64,000 bases of DNA. It comes from Guillardia theta CCMP2712. Its lineage: Eukaryota; Protista; Cryptophyta. Positions 42,031 to 55,102 of the stretch are shown piece by piece. Both the position numbers and the translations under genes were made by a program. The stretch spans positions 222,147 through 286,146 of the forward strand of contig NW_005434577.1 of NCBI RefSeq assembly GCF_000315625.1. The letters run 5' to 3'. Within the stretch, counting starts at the first letter, position 1, and each line of letters opens with the position of its first letter. The notes under the pieces were generated by a model. That model was not told the origin of the DNA, ran no database searches, and worked only from the letters and a program-made list of their open reading frames with translations.

Positions 42031-43024
42031 TAAGACTGTAGGGCCGCCGGGACTGCCGCCGGGACAAGTTGACCCATGAAATTGAAGATGAACGGTTCAC
42101 GGTTGGACTGGTGAGACTCAGAGGGGACCGGACTGAGGTGGCCGGGCCCGGGCCCGGGCCCCGGTCCCGGCGGCGGGTCACCACTGGCCAGTTGTCAGTG
42201 AATCGAGATGATCATCCGAGATCATGGATCGGAGTCCAACACTGACAAGTGGGGCGTTCAAGGGACTCTAAGACGAGAACGTAAACTGAAGCTATGATTG
42301 GCCGCAATGCGACAGATCATCAGGGAGGAGTCGGAGACTCAACCCTCTGGCAGGCATACTGTACTAGAGGCGATGAGCGAGGACCAACCGGGATCCGTCA
42401 GGCCGTGGTGGAGGAACAGAAGGGTGGGGAAGAAGAAGAAGAAGAAGAAGAAGAAGAAGAAGAAGAAGAAGAAGAAGAAGAAGAAGAAGAAGAAGAAGAA
42501 CAAGAAGTTCAAGAAGAACCACGATCAACTGATCGAGGTTGAATATCTATCCAACAAGGAGGAATGTCAGCAACAAGGAGTAATCAGAATAAACCCTTGC
42601 AACATCAGATTGATGACGACAATGGATCTCCAGATACATACAGATCAATGATCGCTAATAGGTGAAAGTCGACCTAGACCACCCTTGGTATCACAAGTAT
42701 CCTCTTGAGATTGTACTCGAGGATGCGCCCAAAAGTTATTGATGCGTTCAAGTCTGCACTTTTGATGCAGCAGGAGCAAGCTTGAAAGCAGAGCTAAGGT
42801 ATCATGCTTACATGCCGATGGATCAAAAAACGATCACTGTTGTACCAGGATGGTATCTTCAGTCATCTCGCTCGAGGGTCGTAGAGGCCAAGTGGAGGCC
42901 AAGAGGTCAAGCAAGCATCTGGCGTTGCAGATTCCAAGAGGCGCAACGATGGTTTCGATCGAGCTCGGTGAGATTTGCTCCGATCTCCGTTAGCTTAACC
43001 TTTTTCTCCATCACTCATCTTCTT

Positions 43025-44155
43025 CTACGTGCTCCCTCCCCCGCAAGTGCCCTTCAGTCCTAGCAGACCGATCGCTGCCGCCCGTGCTCGCATAATGCTG
43101 CTGCCCCCGCACTCCTTGCATCCCGATCGGACCCGCCCGTGCTCGCATATGCTGCTGCCCCCGCATCCCTTGCATCTCGATCTGATCCGCCCGTGCTCGC
43201 ATATGCTGCTGCCCCCGCACTCCTTGCATCTCGATCGCTGCCGCCCGTGCTCGCATATGCTCCTGCCCCCGCACTCCTTGCATTGCGATCGGACCCGCCC
43301 GTGCTCGCATATGCTGCCCCCCCCGCATCCCTTGCATCTCGATCTGATCCGCCCGTGCTCGCATATGCTCCTGCCCCCGCATCCCTTGCAGACCGATCGC
43401 TGCCGCCCGTGCTCGCATATGCTCCTGCCCCCGCACTCCTTGCATTGCGATCGCTGCCGCCCGTGCTCACATATGCTCCTGCCCCCGCACTCCTTGCATC
43501 CCGATCGCTGCCGCCCGTGCTCACATATGCTCCTGCCCCCGCACTCCTTGCATCCCGATCGCTGCCGCCCGTGCTCGCATATGCTGCTGCCCCCGCATCC
43601 CTTGCATACCGATCGCTGCCGCCCGTGCTCGCATATGCTGCCGCCCCCGCATCCCTTGCATTCCAATCGCCGCCGTCCGTGCTCGCATATGCTGCTGCCC
43701 CCGCACTCCTTGCATTGCGATCGTCGCCGCCCGTGCTCGCATATGCTCCTGCCCCCGCATCCCTTGCATCCCGATCGGACCCGCCCGTGCTCGCATATGC
43801 TGCCCCCCCCGCATCCCTTGCATTGCGATCGTTCCCGCCCGTGCTCGCATATGCTGCTGCCCCCGCACTCCTTGCATTGCGATCGTCGCCGCCCGTGCTC
43901 GCATATGCTGCTGCCCCCGCACTCCTTGCATTGCGATCGTCGCCGCCCGTGCTCGCATATGCTGCTGCCCCCGCACTCCTTGCATTGCGATCGCTGCCGC
44001 CCGTGCTCACATAAACTCCTTCGTATCCTTTTGTTTTCTACTCGTCCTTCTCCTTTCAATGTGTCAACTCCTTCTCTTCCTTCTTGTCTCTCCTTCTCAT
44101 CGCTCATCTTCCTCCTCCTCTTGCGTGTCGTTCCACAGTCTGCTGCTGTAGACAT
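43025..44155 (-). CDS. CEHGR Cys/His-repeat protein A: basic NLS-like leader plus 17 intact 18-aa repeats plus a frameshifted 18th
   Basis: RKRRRK leader; 54-bp tandem unit encoding CEHGRxRSxCKxCGGxSI; intronless. Confidence 0.8.
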   Translation of the reverse strand: MSTAADCGTTRKRRRKMSDEKERQEGREGVDTLKGEGRVENKRIRRSLCEHGRQRSQCKECGGSSICEHGRRRSQCKECGGSSICEHGRRRSQCKECGGSSICEHGRERSQCKGCGGGSICEHGRVRSGCKGCGGRSICEHGRRRSQCKECGGSSICEHGRRRLECKGCGGGSICEHGRQRSVCKGCGGSSICEHGRQRSGCKECGGRSICEHGRQRSGCKECGGRSICEHGRQRSQCKECGGRSICEHGRQRSVCKGCGGRSICEHGRIRSRCKGCGGGSICEHGRVRSQCKECGGRSICEHGRQRSRCKECGGSSICEHGRIRSRCKGCGGSSICEHGRVRSGCKECGGSSIMRARAAAIGLLGLKGTCGGGST

Positions 44156-45297
44156 CGCAGGAATACAGCGCTGCCCTCTAGCTGTTGGACGTGGCGCTGC
44201 ACTCTTTCGCTAGATCTGTTCTCGTGCGGGCGTTTATTAATGCATAGGTTTGGGGTAGGTAGTCTCGGCATAGGAGAATAGTACCTGTTCTTATTATTCA
44301 AAACGTTTTATTTTGTACTGATTAATTTACTCAATAAAAATTTCAGAAGAATAGTTTTTTAATTGTAAATGATATTTGTACTGATATGAATAATGCAGTA
44401 CAAATATCAATGGCAATAACGAAAATTTTATAGCATCAAAACAATGAGTAAACCTTCGCTGGGTGCAGGGAGCTGAATAAACCATCAGGGGCTTTTTGAA
44501 AACTTAGATTGTAAACTTTCTTCCCAAATTTGAAACTCTGAAAAACGTATTTGATAATATTTCTATATAAATAGAAAATTGCTGATTATTTGGAAATCAA
44601 AACGATAAAGCATGGACGACGGAAAGATCTCGGGGGTAGAATTGAACGGGTAGTGTTTGACCTGCCCACTAGGGGTACTTATACTTCGACTACCCTATAT
44701 CTTTATAGTAAAACAAAGTAAAGGGGGTGGGTCCTCAGTCCCTGCGAGATCCGCTGCCCGTCGCCAATGGCAGATGTCGAGTTTTCTAGTACGGAAGCGG
44801 GATGCAGGGGAGCGGGGATGAAGGGAAGCAGGGACACAGGGCAGGAGTTAGAAGGGGAGCAGGAGCAGGAGGGGACGAGGGGACGAGGGGAGCAGGAGAA
44901 CAGGAGATCAGAGGAGGAGCAGGACGGTAGAAGGAAAGAAAAGGTAGCAGGAAAAGCTGAGACGGCAACGAGGCGAGGAGAGCAGGCAGGGTTGATGTGG
45001 TGGGGGGGAGGGTTCGTAACAAGAAATTTCCTTGAAGAAACCTTACCATGTACAAGAAATTTCCTTGAAGAAACCTTACCATTGAGAAATATTTTCCTTT
45101 GGTGATTGTATGAACCGTGTGTGCTGATACGGTTTTCTTTCTATTTTGCAGTCAGGTCCCTTGCCTTATTTCCCTATCACAGCTGCAGACTCTTGTCTCT
45201 TTCTTCCTTGCATGTTGTTGGAAACACCATGAAACATAGCACACACAATGCCTCTGTTGTTGCAGCTGCTGGTTTGGTGCTTAGCTGTGCATGACAG

Positions 45298-47111
45298 ATG
45301 TCGGACTACGGAGGAGGCGATCACGGATCGGGCGGCAATCAGGAGTATCAATCTGGGCTTGTTTATCAGCAAGGGCAAGAGGGCCAAGGAGGAGGTGCTG
45401 GTGCTGACTACACGAGTGGCTATGCCGTTGCAAGCGAATATCCCGGAGGCAGCAGAGCTGACATGGGACAATCCAACGAGCCGGCTGGTTTCAAACTTTT
45501 TGTCGGCGGGATCCCATGGAAGTACAGTGACGAGGATCTTCGGGAGCATTTCTCTCAATACGGAAACGTGATTTCTGCGAACGTGAGATAGCGAGTGTCG
45601 ATCGTGTGGTCGCGTTGTGATGGAGAGCCGTGCAGGTCATTGTTGAGAAAGTTGGTGAACATGCTGGAAAGTCTCGAGGGTTTGGCTTCGTCATTTATGA
45701 AAGGAAGGAAGATTCTGAAGAAGCCATCCGCGTCTTGCATGAGTCAGAGATCGAAGGCCGAAAGGTACAAAGTTGGAAACCTGACTCTGTGGAGCTCACT
45801 AGTCCTGGTGCAGATCACAGTCAAAGTTGCGACTGAGAGAGCTCCAGGTTCGGGCCCGATGAGAGATAGAAGGTATCTGCTCCTGTTTTACAGGGTCCAT
45901 GGTATCACTCATACTCTTGACTGCTCAGACCCATGGGTGACAGGAGAGACTTTGGCCGGGATCGTGAGAGAATGGGTAAGTTGAAACCTTGTGTTGGTGT
46001 TGATATCTGGCATCCATTCCTTTCATGTTCACAAACGCCACTGTCATGAAGATGTAGGCTTTTATGACAGAATTTCAGATCGTCCTCGATCCCCTCCACG
46101 CATGGACGAACGTGGGCCTCCCCGCGGCTATTATCGGCATGATGACAGGGACATGGGAAGGCCGATGCCTGACGATAGAGGTCCTCGGGGCGGACCGCCG
46201 ATGGATCGTTATCCTCCAAGAGGGATGGATGACCGTAGAGGAGACTTTCGTAGAGGGCCAGACAGATACGGAGACCGCGGCGACGATCGTTTCGGACCAG
46301 ACGGTGGTCGCAATGACGATCGCGGGATGGGCAGACCATCCTACATGCAAGACCGTGGCGGCTATCCTCCCGACAGGGGCTTCCCTCGAGGAATGGATGA
46401 TCGCGGTCCCCGTGGGCCTCCGTGAGAGCCGCTCTTCTGGTGGAAGGAGTGGTGCTGATCGGTTTTCAGGATGGACGACAGGGGGGGACGAATGGGTGGT
46501 GGCATGAGAGGTGCTTGTCTTTAACGTTAGATAGCTGTCCTGACTTGGCGGTGTGCAAGTAGATTATGACGGTCGTGGGTATGGACGAGGGGAGCGAGGA
46601 CCTCCTCCCGGCGATCGATCCGCCGAGAGGCCCCGAATGGATGATCGCCGTCCTCCAGGTTTGGGAGCTAAAAAGGGGGTTGGTGCTTCTCTTTCATCTG
46701 ACGATCGAGAAGGTGGGATGAGAGATGATCGTGGTCGTGGCCCTCCAGGTGACTAGAAACGTTTCACCCTGCATGTTGGCGTTGCGGGACTGACCCAGCT
46801 ACAGTCGACAGAGACTTCGGACGGGGTGGCCCTGGTCCTTACTCTGGAGATCCTTACCGGGGCGGACCCGGGTAAACTTCTCGTTTTTGTTGGATCATTC
46901 CTGAATCAAGCAACAGTGGAGCTCCGGCTGGTCCAGGGTACGGTCAGGGTCCTCCAGGCGGCATGCCAGGTACACAAAGAAATGATGGGTGTAACTCTCG
47001 GCCTGACTGGGACTGTTAGACATGGATCGAAGGGGCCCTCCTCCTGACGGTCGCGGTGGTCCAATGCGCCCATTTGATAGAGATGGCAGAGACAGAGCAC
47101 GTCCATACTGA
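45298..47111 (+). CDS. RRM plus Gly/Arg/Asp/Pro-rich RNA-binding protein
   Basis: FKLFVGGIPW..DEDLREHFSQYG | KSRGFGFVIY..AI..L..EIEGRK | ITVKVA; RGG/DDRG-rich tail ending RARPY*. Confidence 0.85.
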
Positions 47112-48015
47112 TCGATGCCTTCCGAAGATGCTCGCAACGCATATGTTGGCAACTCCGTGTTGCAATGATGCATCAGTACGCTGAAGAAATCTGGGCTGGA
47201 ATACGTTCAGTCCTCCGATTCATCCAGCATATAATTCCTTGGCGCGGGGATTGTGGATATTCGGGACACCATCAATTTTTTTGCAGGAATCGGATCAATC
47301 GAGTCCCAATTTATCTCAGTTGTTTGCAAGTTCGTATGGCACTGCTTATGACTAATATGATATGCTAAGGATAATACTAGCGTTGTCTGCCTCTTGCACG
47401 GACAATGATTGCTTGGGAAAATGATTCTTGATCGCAGTTTATGAGATTGCCGCATTGGTTAATTTGTTTGCAAGCGTCAACTCTCTTTCTCACGCATATC
47501 AATTTTCTGTTCCCTTTGATTCTCATCGCAATTTTTTTGCTCTCTCTGATTATTTTCAATCTCTCTCCTTCATTTCAGCAGCATGAGGGCAGCAGAGACT
47601 TGAGCAGAGTCGACTTGTGAGAAATGCACGTATGAGGCCATGATGCAGTCATGTTGGGTTGCAGAGATGCTGTGAGTTGCCTTGTAAGTCGTGCAGAGGG
47701 AGATCGTCAAGTGAGAAGGCGTGTTGAGTTGAGTGCAAGCACAACAGAGAGTGATGTTTGCTAAGTGCAAGTGCAATTCTTGTCAGTTAACTTGAATGAG
47801 GGGTGCTAGGCGTCTTCAGATCTGCAATCGATCCTTTTCCGGCAGGCCCCTACACTCTCTTCTCACCATTGAACGCTGAGATCGTTTGATCCTTCTCATC
47901 CTGCTCGACGCCTGTCTGCTGATCTTGTTGATGCGGTTTATTTGATTCGGTCAAGCTGATCTGTTAAATAATATCGTAATCTCCTCGCCGCCGTCGCAGC
48001 TCATCTAGTCCAATG

Positions 48016-48466
48016 TCATGGGCCAATGCACCTGGCGTGATTGTACCTGTCGGAGTTGAGGCATCGATGCGAAGGATCACTGGATCGCAGCGAGCAAGAT
48101 TGAAACAAGCGCTGAGAGCGTTTGGTCATTGCAAGCGATGACAAGAGGAGAGAAGGACGGGGCAATGGTGAGGAGGGTAAGAGAACGAGGGAGAACAACT
48201 CAATGACGGGTGATGTCAAGGTTACCCGAAGAGAGTGAAGCTCCCTGCAGACCAGCAGAGGAAAATTATCTGGGAAGTTACCTTCAGTTTGACCTGCGGG
48301 AGTACAAGGGGGAGTTCTTACCAGGAACAAGCAGACGAGGGGGTAGAAGATGGCTGACCAGTCTTGATTGTTCTCGAAAGTGACGTAGTTGGGGCTCGTC
48401 GGATCGACCCAGCAGAAATAAGATTTGCCCTGCAAGCATGTCACCGAGGCTGATGTGGAGAGGGCG

Positions 48467-48499
<33 letters not shown>

Positions 48500-49430
48500 A
48501 GAGAAGTTACCTCCTCGTACTTGCCAATGGCATCTTTCTGCTCATCGGGGTCAAGCCAGTGCCAGTCTTCTAACTTGATGTAGGCGCTGCAGCTAAAGTG
48601 AGAGAGGAAGGGATGGCCGGCGAGCCTCCTACGTCGAGCCGTTATTGATCGTGGTCCCCGTGGAGCAAAAGATAACGTCTGCCACCACGAATGTCACAAG
48701 ATAGAATAAACAAATCTAAAAGAAAGAAGAGAGGAGAAGAGATAGAAGAGAGAACACAAACTTAAAAGAAAGAAGAGACGAGGGGGAAGAGAGGAGAGAA
48801 AGGTCGGGGGAGGGGGCAATGATAGATTGGAAAAAACCGTTCTCCGGGTTGTATGTCTTGCTGCCTTGCATGTCGGACATTTCAATGTCTGAACAGGAAA
48901 TCAACATTTCATGATTGTTGACAACGAAACCTCACCGTTTCCTATCTGCCCATGACATTGTATGTGACTCACGTTGACGGGTAGCTGCAAACAAGCGTGA
49001 CATACTCTCCTCTCCTCCAACTGTCCACTCACATGTGCTACTTGCACTTCATGTCCATGGTGAGTGTGATACGACAACAGTTGTGCCTTCCCTGCGATCA
49101 TACAATCGGCGGGAACCAAGTTGTGCCATTTTCTACAGGGAGCAATTCAGAAACAAGACAGATTGCTAGCTCTTGAGCTTCACCTGATCTCCGGAACCAA
49201 CTGCCACCAGATCAAGTACGTAGCCAGGATAACAAGGACGAGAGTGTAGGCCATCGCGCGAACCACTGAATCTTTCTTGCCGCAAGCACTGGCGTCAAGA
49301 TCTCAGACGTTCCAAGATTAAGCGTGATGCACAACAGATGTAGAACTTGCCTGCAGCGATAAAGAACAGGAAAGAGATGACAAGGATAATGACCCAGCCA
49401 TTCGTCTCTGCCAGATTTTGTCATGGTGGC
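48016..49430 (-). CDS. Two-TM membrane protein with Cys-rich loop (BK-beta-subunit-like topology); multi-exon, approximate ends
   Basis: TM AYTLVLVILATYLIWWQLVP; loop ..ADC..; GKSYFCWVDPTSPNYVTF then TM WSAIFYPLVCLFL. Confidence 0.4.
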
Positions 49431-50490
49431 AAGCACGAGGACAGGACAGTCAAACCTGCGAGGTCCCCTACAGGCATTCTTCCAGCAACACAAAATGAAC
49501 GCGCACTCCCGAGCTCCTCTCTGAGCGCTTGTCTTCAATCAGCTTTCATGGAGCTGACTCCCCTCAAACCACTCGTCTCGTCATTGCCTCGGTAGATTTA
49601 CCCTGCCAATACCTGGAGGAAGAGTTCAGTCGTTAGTCAGAGCGAGTGAGGAGCTCTGAATGCTTGCTGGCTCAGTGTGAAAGAATCATTCCAAGACCAT
49701 TCGAGAACATGAAAGGATCTTCTCTTTTCGCATCTCTTTCTTTCTACCGGCTATGTGTACTCTCTACAGGTCCGAATATCCCATGTAAGATCTTTGAAGT
49801 GAATTCTCTTTGTATAAATCAGATGCGCTCTGTTTCTTCCAGTTAGCATCATATGATTGGATCCCCGGAACAATTCTTCACCATGCAAATTTCTTCTATT
49901 TGAATCACTCCATCGATCGTCCTTCTCCTCTTCGCCCTTTTGCTGCTGCTGCTGCTGCTGCTGCTGCTACTGATGCTGACGCTGCTCCTTCTCATAAATC
50001 TCGAATATTTCTATCATGATCATTCCAATCTCCATTTCATCAGTGCATCAAACAACTACACCATCCTCGTGCTGCTGGAAACGAAAACCTCCTCCTGCTC
50101 CTCCTCCTGATCCTGCTCCTCTTCCTCCTCCTCCTCCTGCTCCTCCTGCTCCTCTTCCTCCTTCTCTCCCTCTGCTACTCTATTTCCTCATTTCACTGTA
50201 TCGTTGCCCCGGCGCCCTTTCGTCAACACCGTTATAAACCGTTACTCGCTTTGCGGCCCGGCCGGGGCCCAGTTACCCTTTATTTGACTGAAAAAGAAGG
50301 ACAAACCGAAGCAAACAAAGGATAGAGCCAACAAACCCGCCTCAATAAAATACTAGGAAACGAAGGAGGCAGCGAAAACCGGCACCAACCACGCAAGCGA
50401 CTCCAACCACGCAAGCGACCCGCATTTGAGCCGGCGCTGCTGCGGCGCTGTGTCAGAGTGATGTATGAGGGGGATGAGTGACAGCGCAAC

Positions 50491-51564
50491 ATGTCGGCTG
50501 TAGGAGGTAGCAGGTCGAGCAAGAGGAGAAGGCTGGAGGGATCAGACGAGGCGAGAGAGGAGAGAGAAATGGAAGCAAACGCAAAGAGAGCGAAGAAGAG
50601 ATCGCCAACACGAAGAAGTACATGCGAGCATGGACGGCAGCGATCGAAATGCAAGGGATGCGGGGGCGGCAGCATATGCGAGCACGGGCGGGTCCGATCG
50701 GTCTGCAAGGAGTGCGGGGGCAGCAGCATATGCGAGCACGGGCGGGTCAGATCGGTCTGCAAGGGATGCGGGGGCAGGAGCATATGCGAGCACGGGCGGG
50801 AGCGATCGAAATGCAAGGGATGCGGGGGCAGGAGCATATGCGAGCACGGGCGGCAGCGATCGGGATGCAAGCGCTGCGGGGGCAGCAGCATATGTGAGCA
50901 CGGGCGGGAGCGATCGAGATGCAAGGAGTGCGGGGGCAGCAGCATATGCGAGCACGGGCGGGAGCGATCGAGATGCAAGGAGTGCGGGGGCAGGAGCATA
51001 TGCGAGCATGGGCGGCAGCGATCGCAATGCAAGGGATGCGGGGGCAGCAGCATATGCGAGCACGGGCGGGTGAGATCGGGATGCAAGGGATGCGGGGGCC
51101 GCAGCATATGCGAGCACGGGCGAGTGAGATCGGGATGCAAGGACTGCGGGGGCAGCAGCATATGCGAGCACGGGCGGCGGCGATCGGGATGCAAGGACTG
51201 CGGGGGCAGGAGCATATGCGAGCACGGGCGGCAGCGATCGAGATGCAAGGGCTGCGGGGGCAGCAGCATATGCCAGCACGGGCGGGTGAGATCGCAATGC
51301 AAGGGATGCGGGGGCAGGAGCATATGCGAGCACGGGCGGCAGCGATCGGTCTGCAAGGGATGCGGGGGGGGCAGCATATGCGAGCACGGGCGGGTCCGAT
51401 CGGTCTGCAAGGGCTGCGGGGGGAGCAGCATATGCGAGCACGGGCGGGTGAGATCGGTATGCAAGGAATGCAGGGGAGGGAGCATATGCGAGCACGGGCG
51501 GGTGAAATCGAGATGCAAGGGATGCGGGGGAGGAAGCAGCAAGTACAAGCAGGAGAGGAGCTGA
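50491..51564 (+). CDS. CEHGR Cys/His-repeat protein B: NLS-like leader plus 17 repeats
   Basis: SKRRRLE..KRAKKR leader (44 aa), 17 x 18 aa, tail KYKQERS; intronless. Confidence 0.85.
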   Translation: MSAVGGSRSSKRRRLEGSDEAREEREMEANAKRAKKRSPTRRSTCEHGRQRSKCKGCGGGSICEHGRVRSVCKECGGSSICEHGRVRSVCKGCGGRSICEHGRERSKCKGCGGRSICEHGRQRSGCKRCGGSSICEHGRERSRCKECGGSSICEHGRERSRCKECGGRSICEHGRQRSQCKGCGGSSICEHGRVRSGCKGCGGRSICEHGRVRSGCKDCGGSSICEHGRRRSGCKDCGGRSICEHGRQRSRCKGCGGSSICQHGRVRSQCKGCGGRSICEHGRQRSVCKGCGGGSICEHGRVRSVCKGCGGSSICEHGRVRSVCKECRGGSICEHGRVKSRCKGCGGGSSKYKQERS

Positions 51565-52596
51565 TCAGGAGCGGACAAGATGTTGCTGTGTAGCAGGATG
51601 ACTGGCTTGCAGGGATGGCATGGTCGCGCTGGGCAAGGAGGTAACTCAGTAGCGGTAGAATGTGGTACCGGTAGGCTATCCAGCACCAGCCACGCAACCC
51701 CCACCCACTCTTGTAAGGGATGGAGGGGGACGGCCGCGTTCGCAAGGCAGGGTCGGGGTGGTTGGTAACGCTCGTAGGAGGGAGAGGCTGGCAGGAGACG
51801 TGGGAGCGGCATTGAGATTTAGGGGCTTGACGTAAAACACTTGAATGGTAATGGAATAACGAATAGAAACGGCAGGGCAGGTGGAGGCAAGTAGTACGAG
51901 TAGACTTGTACGGTATGACGGTCATGCGGACAGCATCAGCTCACCTTCACGAGAAGACCGTCCAAGTCGCTCGAGACGGAGCTAAAGTCACGACACAGAG
52001 GAGTAGAGGAGCACAGGGAAGGTAGACTGAACACCAGGGTGTGGCTCCTCATGGCATACCCACATGAGGGAGGTCCTCGTGAGACCTCTAGGAGGGTCTC
52101 TGCTGGATTCGTGAGCGAGGAAATCCAGGGAGGGCGCCGGATAGTGAGGAGGGAGCACCTGGAGAGGTGATGAAGGAGAAGAAGGAGGAGCCATGTGGTA
52201 GTGTTTGTTGCATGATTTGTCTGGGATAGAGTGTCGGCGGTTGCTGGAAGATTGATCTGAGACAGCTGAGGAGCTTGTAAGAGAGGCAGAGATCATGATG
52301 GGAGCACGGAAGGATGCAGCTTAGTCCTCATGTGAGGGAGCGCTGGAGTCACGCAGAGCGGCGATGGCGAGACAATGAGGACGTCTTTTAGGAGAGCAAC
52401 GCTGAACGTCTTACAGGTAAGGGACATGATGGTGCGATCAAGACCGTACAGCGAGAACCAGCCCTCATCCTGCCGACTGCTGTCCCCCAACAAAATACTA
52501 GGAAACGGGCCTCCAGAGTTACATTCTTTGATCTGCCCTTCGTTTCTGCTAGGACTCTCTCTGAGGCGGACTGTGATGATGGCTACCTAATCTGCC

Positions 52597-53238
52597 ATGA
52601 CGGCTGTAGGAGGCAGCAGGTCGAGCAAGAGGAGGAGGCTGGAGGGATCAGACACGAAGACAGAGAGAGAAAAGGAGGGGGGCAGATCTGAAGCAGAAAG
52701 GGAAACCAAACGAATACGAAGAAAGCTATGCGAGCACGGGCGGGTTAGATCGAGATGCAAGGGATGCGGGGGCAGCAGCATATGCCAGCACGGGCGGCAG
52801 CGATCGCAATGCAAGGGATGCGGGGGCAGGAGCATATGCGAGCACGGGCGGCAGCGATCGGGATGCAAGGAGTGCGGGGGCAGCAGCATATGCCAGCACG
52901 GGCGGGTGAGATCGAGATGCAAGGGCTGCGGGGGGGGCAGCATATGCGAGCACGGGCGGGAGCGATCGGGATGCAAGGGATGCGGGGGGGGCAGCATATG
53001 CGAGCACGGGCGGGTGAGATCGCAATGCAAGGGATGCGGGGGCAGCAGCATATGCGAGCACGGGCGGGTCCGATCGCAATGCAAGGAGTGCGGGGGCAGG
53101 AGCATATGCCAGCACGGGCGGGTGAGATCGCAATGCAAGGAGTGCGGGGGAGGGAGCATATGCGAGCACGGGCGGGTGAGATCGAAATGCAAGGAGTGCG
53201 GGGGAGGAAGCAGCAGGTACAAGCAGGAGAGGAGCTGA
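52597..53238 (+). CDS. CEHGR Cys/His-repeat protein C: NLS-like leader plus 9 repeats; tandem paralog of B
   Basis: Same AVGGSRSSKRRRLEGSD leader, YKQERS tail and 3' flank as B. Confidence 0.85.
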   Translation: MTAVGGSRSSKRRRLEGSDTKTEREKEGGRSEAERETKRIRRKLCEHGRVRSRCKGCGGSSICQHGRQRSQCKGCGGRSICEHGRQRSGCKECGGSSICQHGRVRSRCKGCGGGSICEHGRERSGCKGCGGGSICEHGRVRSQCKGCGGSSICEHGRVRSQCKECGGRSICQHGRVRSQCKECGGGSICEHGRVRSKCKECGGGSSRYKQERS

Positions 53239-54079
53239 TCTGGTGCGGACAAGATGCTGCAGTGTAGAAAAGATGACTGGCTTGCAGGATCACAAGGGGG
53301 CAACACACTAGGGAAGGAGAGAGACGGCAGCGGGTGCTGGGCAGAGTCAGCGGGTGCTGAGGAGGATTTGCGATGGAGATAATGAAGAGAATGCAGGCAC
53401 GTGCTCGTGAGGACCATGTAACGGTACTTGGATGCTGTTGACTGGTTGGTGGACGTTGGGAGCATCGTGTTGAAGGAGGAGGAGAAGGGGCAGCAGCTTC
53501 CCACCCCAACGTGGGGATGGTCAGCGTCTGATATTGAGACCAAGACGGGGAGGGAGGGACTTGCACGGCATGCGGGAGTAGGGCAGCCAGTAGGACCCCC
53601 ACGTCGCCGTCAAAACGGCGGGGTGCGGAGTCATAGTACGAGCAGGGGATGTGAAGGACGCCTTGCCTTGAGGATCACAGCGGCCACTGAGACATAAGGC
53701 GCGTGGGGCCCCTTGAAGAGGGTCAGTCAGCATATGTTGTGATGTACTGGCAGTGCCATAGAGCTGCTCTGCTTGAGCTTCTTGAGCTGGACATACGAGC
53801 ACGTGGACGATAAACGGAGGGATAGGGCGGTCAGATCACTTCTATTGATACCGTCGCAGGGAGCTTATGGAGGGCTGGTGCAAGCGAGCTGGACTGTACT
53901 CATGACAAGTGCTCGCAGCACCACGATGTGCTGCCTTGCCCGAGCGTGAAAACGAGAGCTCGGTCGAAGGCCCATCCCACGGTCTAATGATGGGGGTTAG
54001 GCTCCCGCAAGTAGTCTGCCGCCGGAGTCAAACTTGGGGCGGAGGGTGGGTAATATACATGCGCGGGTTGCGAATGAGG

Positions 54080-54171
54080 GAACATCGTGTACTTGCCTGA
54101 GAGAACATCGTGTACTTGCCTGAGAGAACATCGTGTACTTGCCTGAGAGAACATCGTGTACTTGTCTGAGA
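54080..54171. repeat. 23-bp tandem repeat x4 (GAACATCGTGTACTTGCCTGAGA)
   Basis: Head-to-tail copies without spacers. Confidence 0.95.
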
Positions 54172-54252
54172 TAACTTTAGTTCTGAACACACAATATCAT
54201 GCTCAACACGGTAGACTTGAGCGTGTCCTGCCAACTTCAACGGCACTGCAGC

Positions 54253-55102
54253 TCACGGGAGATAGCTTCTCATGGCGAGTGGAGAAGTACACTCCGCATT
54301 GCAGACTGGGCATCTGCCGATGTTGCCTTGCTTGACCAGTGGCGAACAAACTTCGCAGATCGCCAGGTGACTGCAGGGTACGAATGCATGCGACAGCTTG
54401 TCACGCCATCCCTCTGCTACCTCTGCCCTTGTGGTGACCTGCTGTCCATCCATGCTCTTGGCCCTGTCCTCTATGGCCGAAACCTTGATTTCCTCTCGCT
54501 GCGTACTTGCTGTGGGCGGTTCGTTATGGGTCAGCGATTGAGGAACAGCTACCTGATTGGTCTTCTTGGTATTAGGACCATCAGCAGCACTGGGTTGAGA
54601 GACAGGCTTCGCCTCAGGTATCGACAACGAAGACGACAAGCTCGATTGCTCCAATGCTCTCGATCCATGGTGTGATGGTTGAATCGAGCTTTGTTGCGCT
54701 GAATTGGATGACGGGTCTTGAGCGTCTGGAGTTGATGGAGAGCGAGAGGTTTTGTTAGATGCCTTACCACCCACGTTTGCTGTTCGTGCTTCGTCTCGGG
54801 TCTTGCCATACATTAAAGAAAGTCTGCTGTCTCGTTTTGAGAGGACTTGGTGGGTATTCTTATTCAACGACACATCCTGCGTGAATCTATCTGCGTGTTG
54901 TGCTGTCATGTCAGGTCGATCGGCAAAAGGGCATATCTAGTAGCTGACTACTCGGACTGCTCTGACCAGTACATATGTCCAGCCGGACAGCAGCAGCACT
55001 TGTCTCAGACACAGGTTTCGCTTCAGGCACGCCGACAACGAGGCTGCCATAGCAGCTCATCGTCGCCATAGACTCGCATGGTAGCGACGCTCCTTCCATC
55101 AT
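54253..55102 (-). CDS. Protein with C-terminal partial RING-HC (C3HC4_3-like) finger
   Basis: SHAFVPCSHLAICEVC..RCPVC; the first CxxC is not visible. Confidence 0.6.

Follow-up and report, generated by a model that had tools for sequence, protein, structure and literature searches.

A stretch of 64,000 nucleotides from the cryptophyte Guillardia theta (contig C97, positions 222147-286146; hereafter the window) carries three genes, A, B and C, that are built almost entirely of tandem 18-residue Cys/His units with the consensus CEHGRxRSxCKxCGGxSI. We call this the CEH unit and number its four variable residues X6, X9, X12 and X16. The tandem arrays are real and far from random, and are characteristic of a large orphan family. 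Within them the scaffold is almost fixed, and X6 and X9 change from unit to unit. Judging from the sequence patterns set out below, we hold it a little better than an even chance that the three proteins are nuclear, modular, sequence-reading DNA-binding arrays, in which X6 and X9 would be the main specificity residues and X12 and X16 would add to specificity in the subfamily of the window genes.

Variation is concentrated at fixed positions of a conserved unit

Translation of the open reading frames (ORFs) gives, for each gene, a leader of 44-48 residues followed by 18-residue units exactly in register. The ORFs and the unit parse agree on the 17, 17 and 9 units that an earlier note, made from the sequence alone, had assigned to the three genes, and an exact 18-residue period with the pattern C-x-H-x6-C-x2-C-G-G is present in 43/43 units. 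Tandem Repeats Finder places 54-nt arrays, with matches of 88-89%, at 43068-44013, 50622-51530 and 52727-53204.

Measured across the 43 units, the entropy of the amino acids is 1.98 bits at X6, 2.30 at X9, 1.35 at X12 and 1.56 at X16, and does not exceed 0.45 bits at the other fourteen positions. Scaffold codons are nearly fixed as well (TGC in 39/43 units, CAC in 41/43, AAG and AGC each in 43/43). At the variable positions the residues are drawn from small sets of codons: at X9 we count CAA 13 times, GGA 10, AGA 9, GTC 5, AAA 3, GTA 2 and GAA once. The near-invariance of fourteen positions and their codons, and the small pools at the remaining four, are therefore as the earlier note had them.

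We then compared pairs of units within arrays by the Nei-Gojobori method, in the window genes and in a second sample of 28 arrays from the whole genome, using the proportions of nonsynonymous (pN) and synonymous (pS) differences. In the window genes the fixed codons have a pN of 0.012 and a pS of 0.132, and the scaffold pN/pS is 0.09 (0.20 in the 28-array sample). At X6/X9, pN is 0.552, which is 4.2 times the pS of the fixed codons (3.85 times in the 28-array sample); at X12/X16 it is 0.302, a ratio of 2.3. An excess of about fourfold at X6/X9 means that these sites are not merely unconstrained. The scaffold, including the basic residues R5, R7 and K11, is under purifying selection and is kept alike at the DNA level. 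Among the fixed codons, nucleotide diversity at 4-fold sites lies between 0.02 and 0.27 in all but one of 21 arrays, the exception being that of locus L028 with 0.50; in every one of the 21 it is exceeded by the diversity at codon positions 1-2 of X6/X9, 0.41-0.67. The earlier note had claimed that variation is concentrated at fixed positions and had proposed an entropy and dN/dS analysis as a check; the variation is indeed concentrated there, above synonymous divergence, and at X6/X9 it is not neutral.

A large family in which each gene has its own array

We searched the 87,145,349-base G. theta assembly (669 contigs) in six frames with gene C. This gave more than 163 matches at about 75 separate loci, a lower bound, many of them clustered on contigs C118, C161, C97, C219 and C290. 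Thirty loci were fetched, and yielded 28 distinct arrays and 402 parsed units. Most of the sampled genes have a leader containing SSKRRRLEGSD, an array of 5 to at least 36 units and a tail RYKQ(G/A/E)RS; this leader and tail are specific to the host and absent from the viral proteins described below. Most of the 28 arrays are open, and several paralogues contain stops or frameshifts.

Entropy over the 402 units is 2.16 bits at X6, 2.94 at X9, 2.01 at X12 and 1.53 at X16, and at most 0.5 elsewhere. Some subfamilies fix X12 and X16 and vary X6 and X9 only (D/S at the fixed pair in L018, L021 and L023; A/G in L019). Of the four-position code proposed in the earlier note, X6 and X9 hold throughout, being always hypervariable, but X12 and X16 vary in the subfamily of the window genes and are fixed in others. 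That subfamily has 112 distinct four-residue codes among 241 units. Its four variable positions assort almost independently, except X6 and X9, whose mutual information is 0.229 versus 0.126 +/- 0.022 in shuffles.

The arrays also differ from gene to gene. The leaders of gene C and of its paralogue L002, on contig C161, agree at 98.5% of 132 nt, yet the arrays behind them, of 9 and 15 units, have no unit code in common; other paralogue pairs with close leaders likewise share no codes. A real, expanded family of Cys3His repeats is thus present genome-wide, as the earlier note had proposed, and paralogues whose leaders are nearly identical have entirely different arrays.

Some of the sampled arrays have a higher-order period of unit codes. 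The 36-unit array of L018/L023 (C219:39218-43291) repeats the series RK RK VA RL at least 4 times, and L019 (C12:403849-407421) has the period IH RE IE RH. The pattern suggests recent multi-unit duplications, and these proteins could conceivably read tandem DNA repeats.

Relatives in algae and giant viruses join the array to nucleases

A word-indexed protein search, in which 8000 candidates were scored, found 3480 proteins at E <= 1e-3. They come from algae and giant viruses, with Rhodomonas salina, Chromera velia and Phaeocystis antarctica among the sources that are named. Feature and fold searches of ESM-Atlas (template-modelling score, TM, 0.73-0.77) lead to clusters that have no Pfam family, labelled 'cysteine-rich protein with zinc finger' in Chlorophyta and 'hypothetical protein' in Nucleocytoviricota. 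Together with the viral loci described below, these searches bear out the statement in the earlier note that algae and giant viruses commonly have repeats of this type. The 120 best homologues give their highest mean within-array entropy at X6 (2.14 bits) and X9 (2.45), and the same two positions are the most variable within arrays in the window and in the genome.

For the CEH repeat itself we found no Pfam model, PDB relative or publication. No Pfam match was significant for the whole window proteins (E <= 1) or for pieces of them (E <= 10), the best scores for pieces being Zn_ribbon_Nudix (E 0.28 with two units, 0.34 with three) and F-box (0.36). A sequence search of the PDB with gene B gave no match, and no paper on this repeat was found by motif strings and descriptors. 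The cysteine-rich repeats of PMC7379824 were considered as the same family and set aside as an unrelated fungal/metazoan motif of about 31 residues.

The closest database matches of the window genes are viral-type proteins that join an array to a nuclease. A C-terminal domain of about 185 residues is present in 81 of the 120 best homologues, with D71, E84, E87 and H90 invariant in the motifs RRPD...E-x-D-E-x2-H. Its AlphaFold2 model has a predicted local distance difference test (pLDDT) score of 84. The best PDB folds for this model are all PD-(D/E)XK nucleases, led by Hjc resolvase (E 4.7e-4, probability 0.99) and including McrC, Bax1, HincII, PspGI and Cas4-like proteins. By sequence, Pfam finds nothing in the viral C-terminal domains except REase_MTES_1575 (E 0.052) in a Rhodomonas protein, a PDB sequence search with a viral C-terminal domain gives no match, and a profile search with it gives only an insignificant A20-type finger match to the first 24 residues. 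Further homologues have an HNH/endonuclease VII domain at the C-terminus (phrog_1035, E 8.9e-11 to 1.1e-5), and one has an N-terminal chromodomain (PF00385, E 3.6e-10). The earlier note had left recognition open between DNA and RNA; the PD-(D/E)XK-like and HNH fusions back DNA reading, and the chromodomain adds a link to chromatin.

In IMG/VR, the PD-(D/E)XK-like domain occurs at at least 575 loci, many in giant-virus metagenome-assembled genomes (MAGs). Among 80 loci that were kept, EsV-1-7 repeats (PF19114, E 2.5e-113) precede the nuclease in 76 and CEH units in 4. One protein, P0001, has a single EsV-1-7 motif, then 14 CEH units, then the nuclease. Two Cys-rich arrays thus alternate before one nuclease and the CEH array precedes two unrelated nucleases, as would be expected of a DNA-targeting module.

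The viral genes also allow X6/X9 to be followed between genes. Where two viral proteins are 75-94% identical in the nuclease domain, X6 differs in 73% and X9 in 80% of units; the Cys and His residues are the same throughout, and changes at R7, K11 and G15 are rare. In the viral orthologues L076, L103 and L109, synonymous sites are saturated (pS about 0.67-0.70), X6/X9 pN is 0.17-0.20, equal to that of the scaffold and the nuclease domain, and most X6/X9 residues, and largely the unit codes, are kept in order. Because X6 and X9 are kept despite saturated pS, they are not simply unconstrained; because they differ between units and are conserved between orthologues, they look like specificity determinants, and the pattern in these three genes only is suggestive of that role.

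Two further proteins were seen in these searches. P0083, from a 5.4-kb contig labelled as a Promethearchaeia archaeon MAG, has a CEH array and an HNH domain; the contig is more likely viral or eukaryotic and wrongly binned. In G. theta, L111 (C43:75335-78778, ORF 1447-3417, minus strand) encodes 656 residues, with about 12 EsV-1-7 repeats and, behind them, the PD-(D/E)XK-like domain typical of giant-virus MAGs (E 7.5e-22), and is probably a virus-derived gene.

A model of the array and its zinc sites

We modelled the nine units of gene C with AlphaFold2 (model m916205ff1304; pLDDT 82, predicted TM score 0.49). In the model, every unit has a one-turn helix at R7-S8-X9 that is flanked by X6 and X9, and a beta-bridge joins I18 to X6 of the following unit. 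Arrays always open with C-x-H and close with C-x2-C-G-G, and the host leader and tail have no Cys or His. Because these boundaries leave no orphan half-sites, zinc is expected to be ligated within units, and each unit most likely binds one zinc via C1, H3, C10 and C13.

Genes A, B and C and their transcription

The features of the three genes are collected in Table 1. The window proteins are strongly basic, with isoelectric points (pI) of 9.4-9.7; gene A (pI 9.41) has 53 Cys and 17 His. Their N-terminal leaders are not hydrophobic and thus contain no signal peptide. No PD-(D/E)XK-like or HNH domain follows the array in any of the three, which stop 7 residues (22 in gene A) after the last unit, in line with the earlier claim that they lack an effector domain. 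The accompanying description, a leader and units only, is right as an overall plan, but B and C end in a 7-residue tail and gene A has a broken 18th unit. Here an extra T near 43093 causes a +1 frameshift; the original frame would read CEHGRQRSVC and then TAG, where the family has AAG for K11. Gene A lacks the family tail RYKQxRS. Homology between B and C is confined to the region from the ATG through about 50 nt beyond the stop, and gene A has in common with them only the array and a short adjoining stretch of leader.

Other reading frames of the arrays (MQGVRGQQH.., PPHSLH..) were rejected as genes, as it is the CEH frame alone that offers a start codon, homologues and the conserved leader and tail. 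A sigma-70 promoter/terminator scan was set aside as irrelevant to a eukaryote.

The absence of introns, also claimed earlier, agrees with the RNA-seq reads, which reveal no splice joint at the 3' end of gene B. The neighbouring gene for an RNA-recognition motif (RRM) protein has a GT..AG intron of about 52 nt at about 45584-45635, and the contrast between intronless arrays and intron-containing genes holds locally.

To follow transcription, about 6% of the reads of one raw RNA-seq run (run X16, a label unrelated to repeat position X16) were sampled and placed on the non-repetitive stretch 51440-52790, chosen because array reads would map to many copies. Reads cover 51440-51899, that is, the last units of gene B, its stop codon and about 335 nt downstream; none fall at 51900-52727. 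A contig of X1 spans 51581-52109, downstream of gene B, and contigs of X1 and X3 cover the gene C leader from 52624. These contigs are probably RNA because they lack the intergenic stretch that is covered by the DNA-like run X11. Genes B and C are transcribed, which for these two genes answers the question of expression raised in the earlier note.

Just past the gene B stop, at 51570, the window has A where 4/5 RNA-seq reads and run X11 (41.3 of 44 depth) have T, owing either to an error in the assembly or to a difference between strains. Run X11 has a further cluster of differences at 52110-52208.

Table 1. Features of genes A, B and C (positions in the window)
Feature	Position	Strand	Description	Basis
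Gene A	43025..44155	-	376 aa: leader, 17 units, aberrant 22-aa tail	ORF and unit parse
Gene A leader	44012..44155	-	48 aa, with RKRRRK and KRIRR basic clusters; putative nuclear localisation signal	Translation
Gene A array	43094..44011	-	17 x 54 nt	Repeat finding and unit parse
Gene A 18th unit	43025..43093	-	Degenerate	Sequence compared with family tails
Gene B	50491..51564	+	357 aa: leader MSAVGGSRSSKRRRLEGSD.., 17 units, tail KYKQERS	ORF and unit parse
Gene B array	50623..51540	+	17 x 54 nt	Repeat finding and unit parse
Transcribed region 3' of the gene B stop	51565..51899	+	Probably 3' untranslated region	Reads of run X16
Gene C	52597..53238	+	213 aa: leader, 9 units, tail RYKQERS	ORF and unit parse
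Gene C array	52729..53214	+	9 x 54 nt; stretch used for modelling	Unit parse

Other features lie nearby. The RRM-type RNA-binding protein gene (RNP1 motif RGFGFV) is at 45298-46425 on the plus strand, between genes A and B, and has short introns of about 52 nt. In two frames, a (GAA)30 microsatellite at 42429-42518 produces long ORFs of poly-E and poly-K. A 23-nt tandem repeat at 54075-54175 (4.4 copies, 96% matches) lies just upstream of a minus-strand ORF at 54253-54909, whose N-terminal stretch, C..IC..C..(10)..CP.C, looks RING-like.

Interpretation and alternatives

If A, B and C are sequence-reading arrays, the leader with its conserved KRRR-type basic cluster would act as a nuclear localisation signal, the 18-residue mini zinc fingers, each with one zinc, would form the array, and the 7-residue tail would close the protein. 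X6 and X9, and in this subfamily also X12 and X16, are kept different between units and between paralogues. The array would read DNA sequence as a portable module with X6 and X9 as its chief specificity residues, and the host proteins, having no catalytic domain, would act as sequence-specific DNA binders, each with its own target. Candidate roles in the host are repressors, site protectors and chromatin markers.

Several results weigh against this interpretation. The array model has no Foldseek match in the PDB at E <= 10, and a wide VIA-align search with it gave none at Z >= 2. Nuclease fusions are confined to distant relatives; the sole match to the nuclease profile in the G. theta genome, on contig C43, lies behind EsV-1-7 repeats and has no CEH units. 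The assignment of the viral domain as PD-(D/E)XK-like rests on TM scores of 0.3-0.4, so the matches are weak to moderate, if consistent. In the 28-array sample the X12/X16 ratio falls to 1.3, close to neutral, and within-array ratios such as the 4.2 for X6/X9 differ from a standard omega in that they compare paralogous units, among which gene conversion acts. The putative recent duplications in L018/L023 and L019 mean that arrays may expand without selection for a target. As for expression, the depth of run X16 is low, and all first mates lie on the plus strand, which does not by itself fix the strand of the RNA.

Hypervariability at fixed positions of a rigid scaffold, in a large clustered family whose arrays are unique, would also fit immune-type receptors. 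The arrays could then offer hypervariable protein-binding surfaces like those of leucine-rich repeat or ankyrin receptors, for example as a nuclear or cytoplasmic repertoire against viral proteins, and the failure to find a DNA-binding fold match for the array model is in keeping with this. However, we consider it unlikely given the conserved basic R5, R7 and K11, the high pI, the repeated nuclease fusions, the one chromodomain, and the exchange with another array before the same nuclease.

That the arrays read RNA, in the manner of PUF or PPR proteins or of CCHC and RanBP2-type zinc knuckles, seems to us unlikely too, if anything a shade more so. Binding of single-stranded RNA is common among small zinc knuckles, the arrays are basic, and nothing in the window separates RNA from DNA. 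The partner domains, however, are PD-(D/E)XK-like and HNH/endonuclease VII, which are predominantly DNA enzymes, and a chromodomain, and the leader looks nuclear rather than organellar.

A Cys-rich, basic composition and the lack of an effector domain would suit proteins with no specificity at all, packaging chromatin or nucleic acid or buffering metal, whose variable sites are simply a tolerant surface. We regard this as quite improbable: the pN of X6/X9, about 4 times the pS of fixed codons, is not neutral, every paralogue has a unique array, and X6/X9 are kept between viral orthologues despite saturated pS. Finally, the closest database matches, the broken 18th unit of gene A and the stops or frameshifts in several paralogues could mark decaying remnants of giant-virus or mobile-element nuclease genes without a host function, but this is very improbable, since most of the 28 arrays are open and share a leader and tail absent from viral proteins, scaffold pN/pS is 0.09-0.2, B and C are transcribed, and the genes are set among intron-containing host genes.

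Comparison with known repeat systems

Like the C2H2 arrays of PRDM9 and the KRAB-ZFPs, CEH arrays are tandem mini-domains, with zinc inferred in the CEH case, whose scaffold is homogenised at the DNA level, with a nonsynonymous excess at a few fixed positions and many clustered paralogues that each have a unique array. The unit itself differs: 18 residues of C-x-H-x6-C-x2-C rather than about 28 of C-x2-4-C-x12-H-x3-5-H, with no zf-C2H2 (PF00096) match and no beta-beta-alpha fold predicted, and the host proteins lack KRAB and SET domains. By ligand spacing and Pfam, the window proteins are not C2H2 proteins. Nor do they belong with CCHC zinc knuckles (PF00098) or CXXC-type fingers, for which spacing differs and Pfam finds none.

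The earlier note had likened the variable positions to the TALE code. TALE arrays share with CEH arrays near-identical units, two hypervariable residues, which in CEH arrays (X6 and X9) covary, variable length and recombination between arrays. TALE units, however, are helical hairpins of 33-35 residues without metal and with the di-residue at 12/13, they have no homology to the 18-residue Cys/His-based CEH unit, and one unit per base is a TALE rule. The likeness holds in part, with two variable positions universal and two confined to the subfamily of the window genes, and there is no relation in sequence or fold to TALE, PUF, PPR or C2H2 repeats.

EsV-1-7 (PF19114; the Ectocarpus IMM family) comes close in other respects: it too is a Cys/His-rich repeat of patchy occurrence in algae and giant viruses, and it precedes the same PD-(D/E)XK-like nuclease. 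Its motif is about 35 residues with a different ligand pattern, and PF19114 finds 0 families in the window proteins, whereas the positive controls L033, L037 and residues 1-60 of P0001 match strongly. Homing-type and engineered zinc-finger nucleases resemble the viral relatives, in which a modular array at the N-terminus is linked with a PD-(D/E)XK-like or HNH nuclease at the C-terminus; the window genes, lacking a nuclease domain, are not of this array-nuclease type.

The principle of modular recognition is known from C2H2 and TALE arrays, and the CEH repeat itself is uncurated and structurally unmatched. As a rather unlikely extension of our interpretation, the CEH unit could be a natural, undescribed programmable scaffold for DNA recognition, with X6/X9 as a readable code. 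Giant viruses would aim nucleases with it. In algal hosts it would have expanded into a fast-evolving nuclear repertoire, here some 75 genes strong, whose products would attach to particular sequences of giant viruses, polinton-like viruses or transposons and either silence or protect them; one way to do so would be to sit on the sites at which viral array-nucleases are aimed.

If X6 and X9 do read DNA, C2H2 and TALE would be joined by a third natural repeat for modular DNA recognition, the CEH array, whose unit of 18 residues is the smallest of the three; its natural variants already linked to nucleases number in the thousands and are open to decoding. A very large orphan family of algae and giant viruses would gain a function, with indirect help towards that of EsV-1-7. 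The roughly 75 fast-diversifying, array-only genes of G. theta would then point to a layer of sequence-specific genome defence or regulation that has gone unrecognised in protists.

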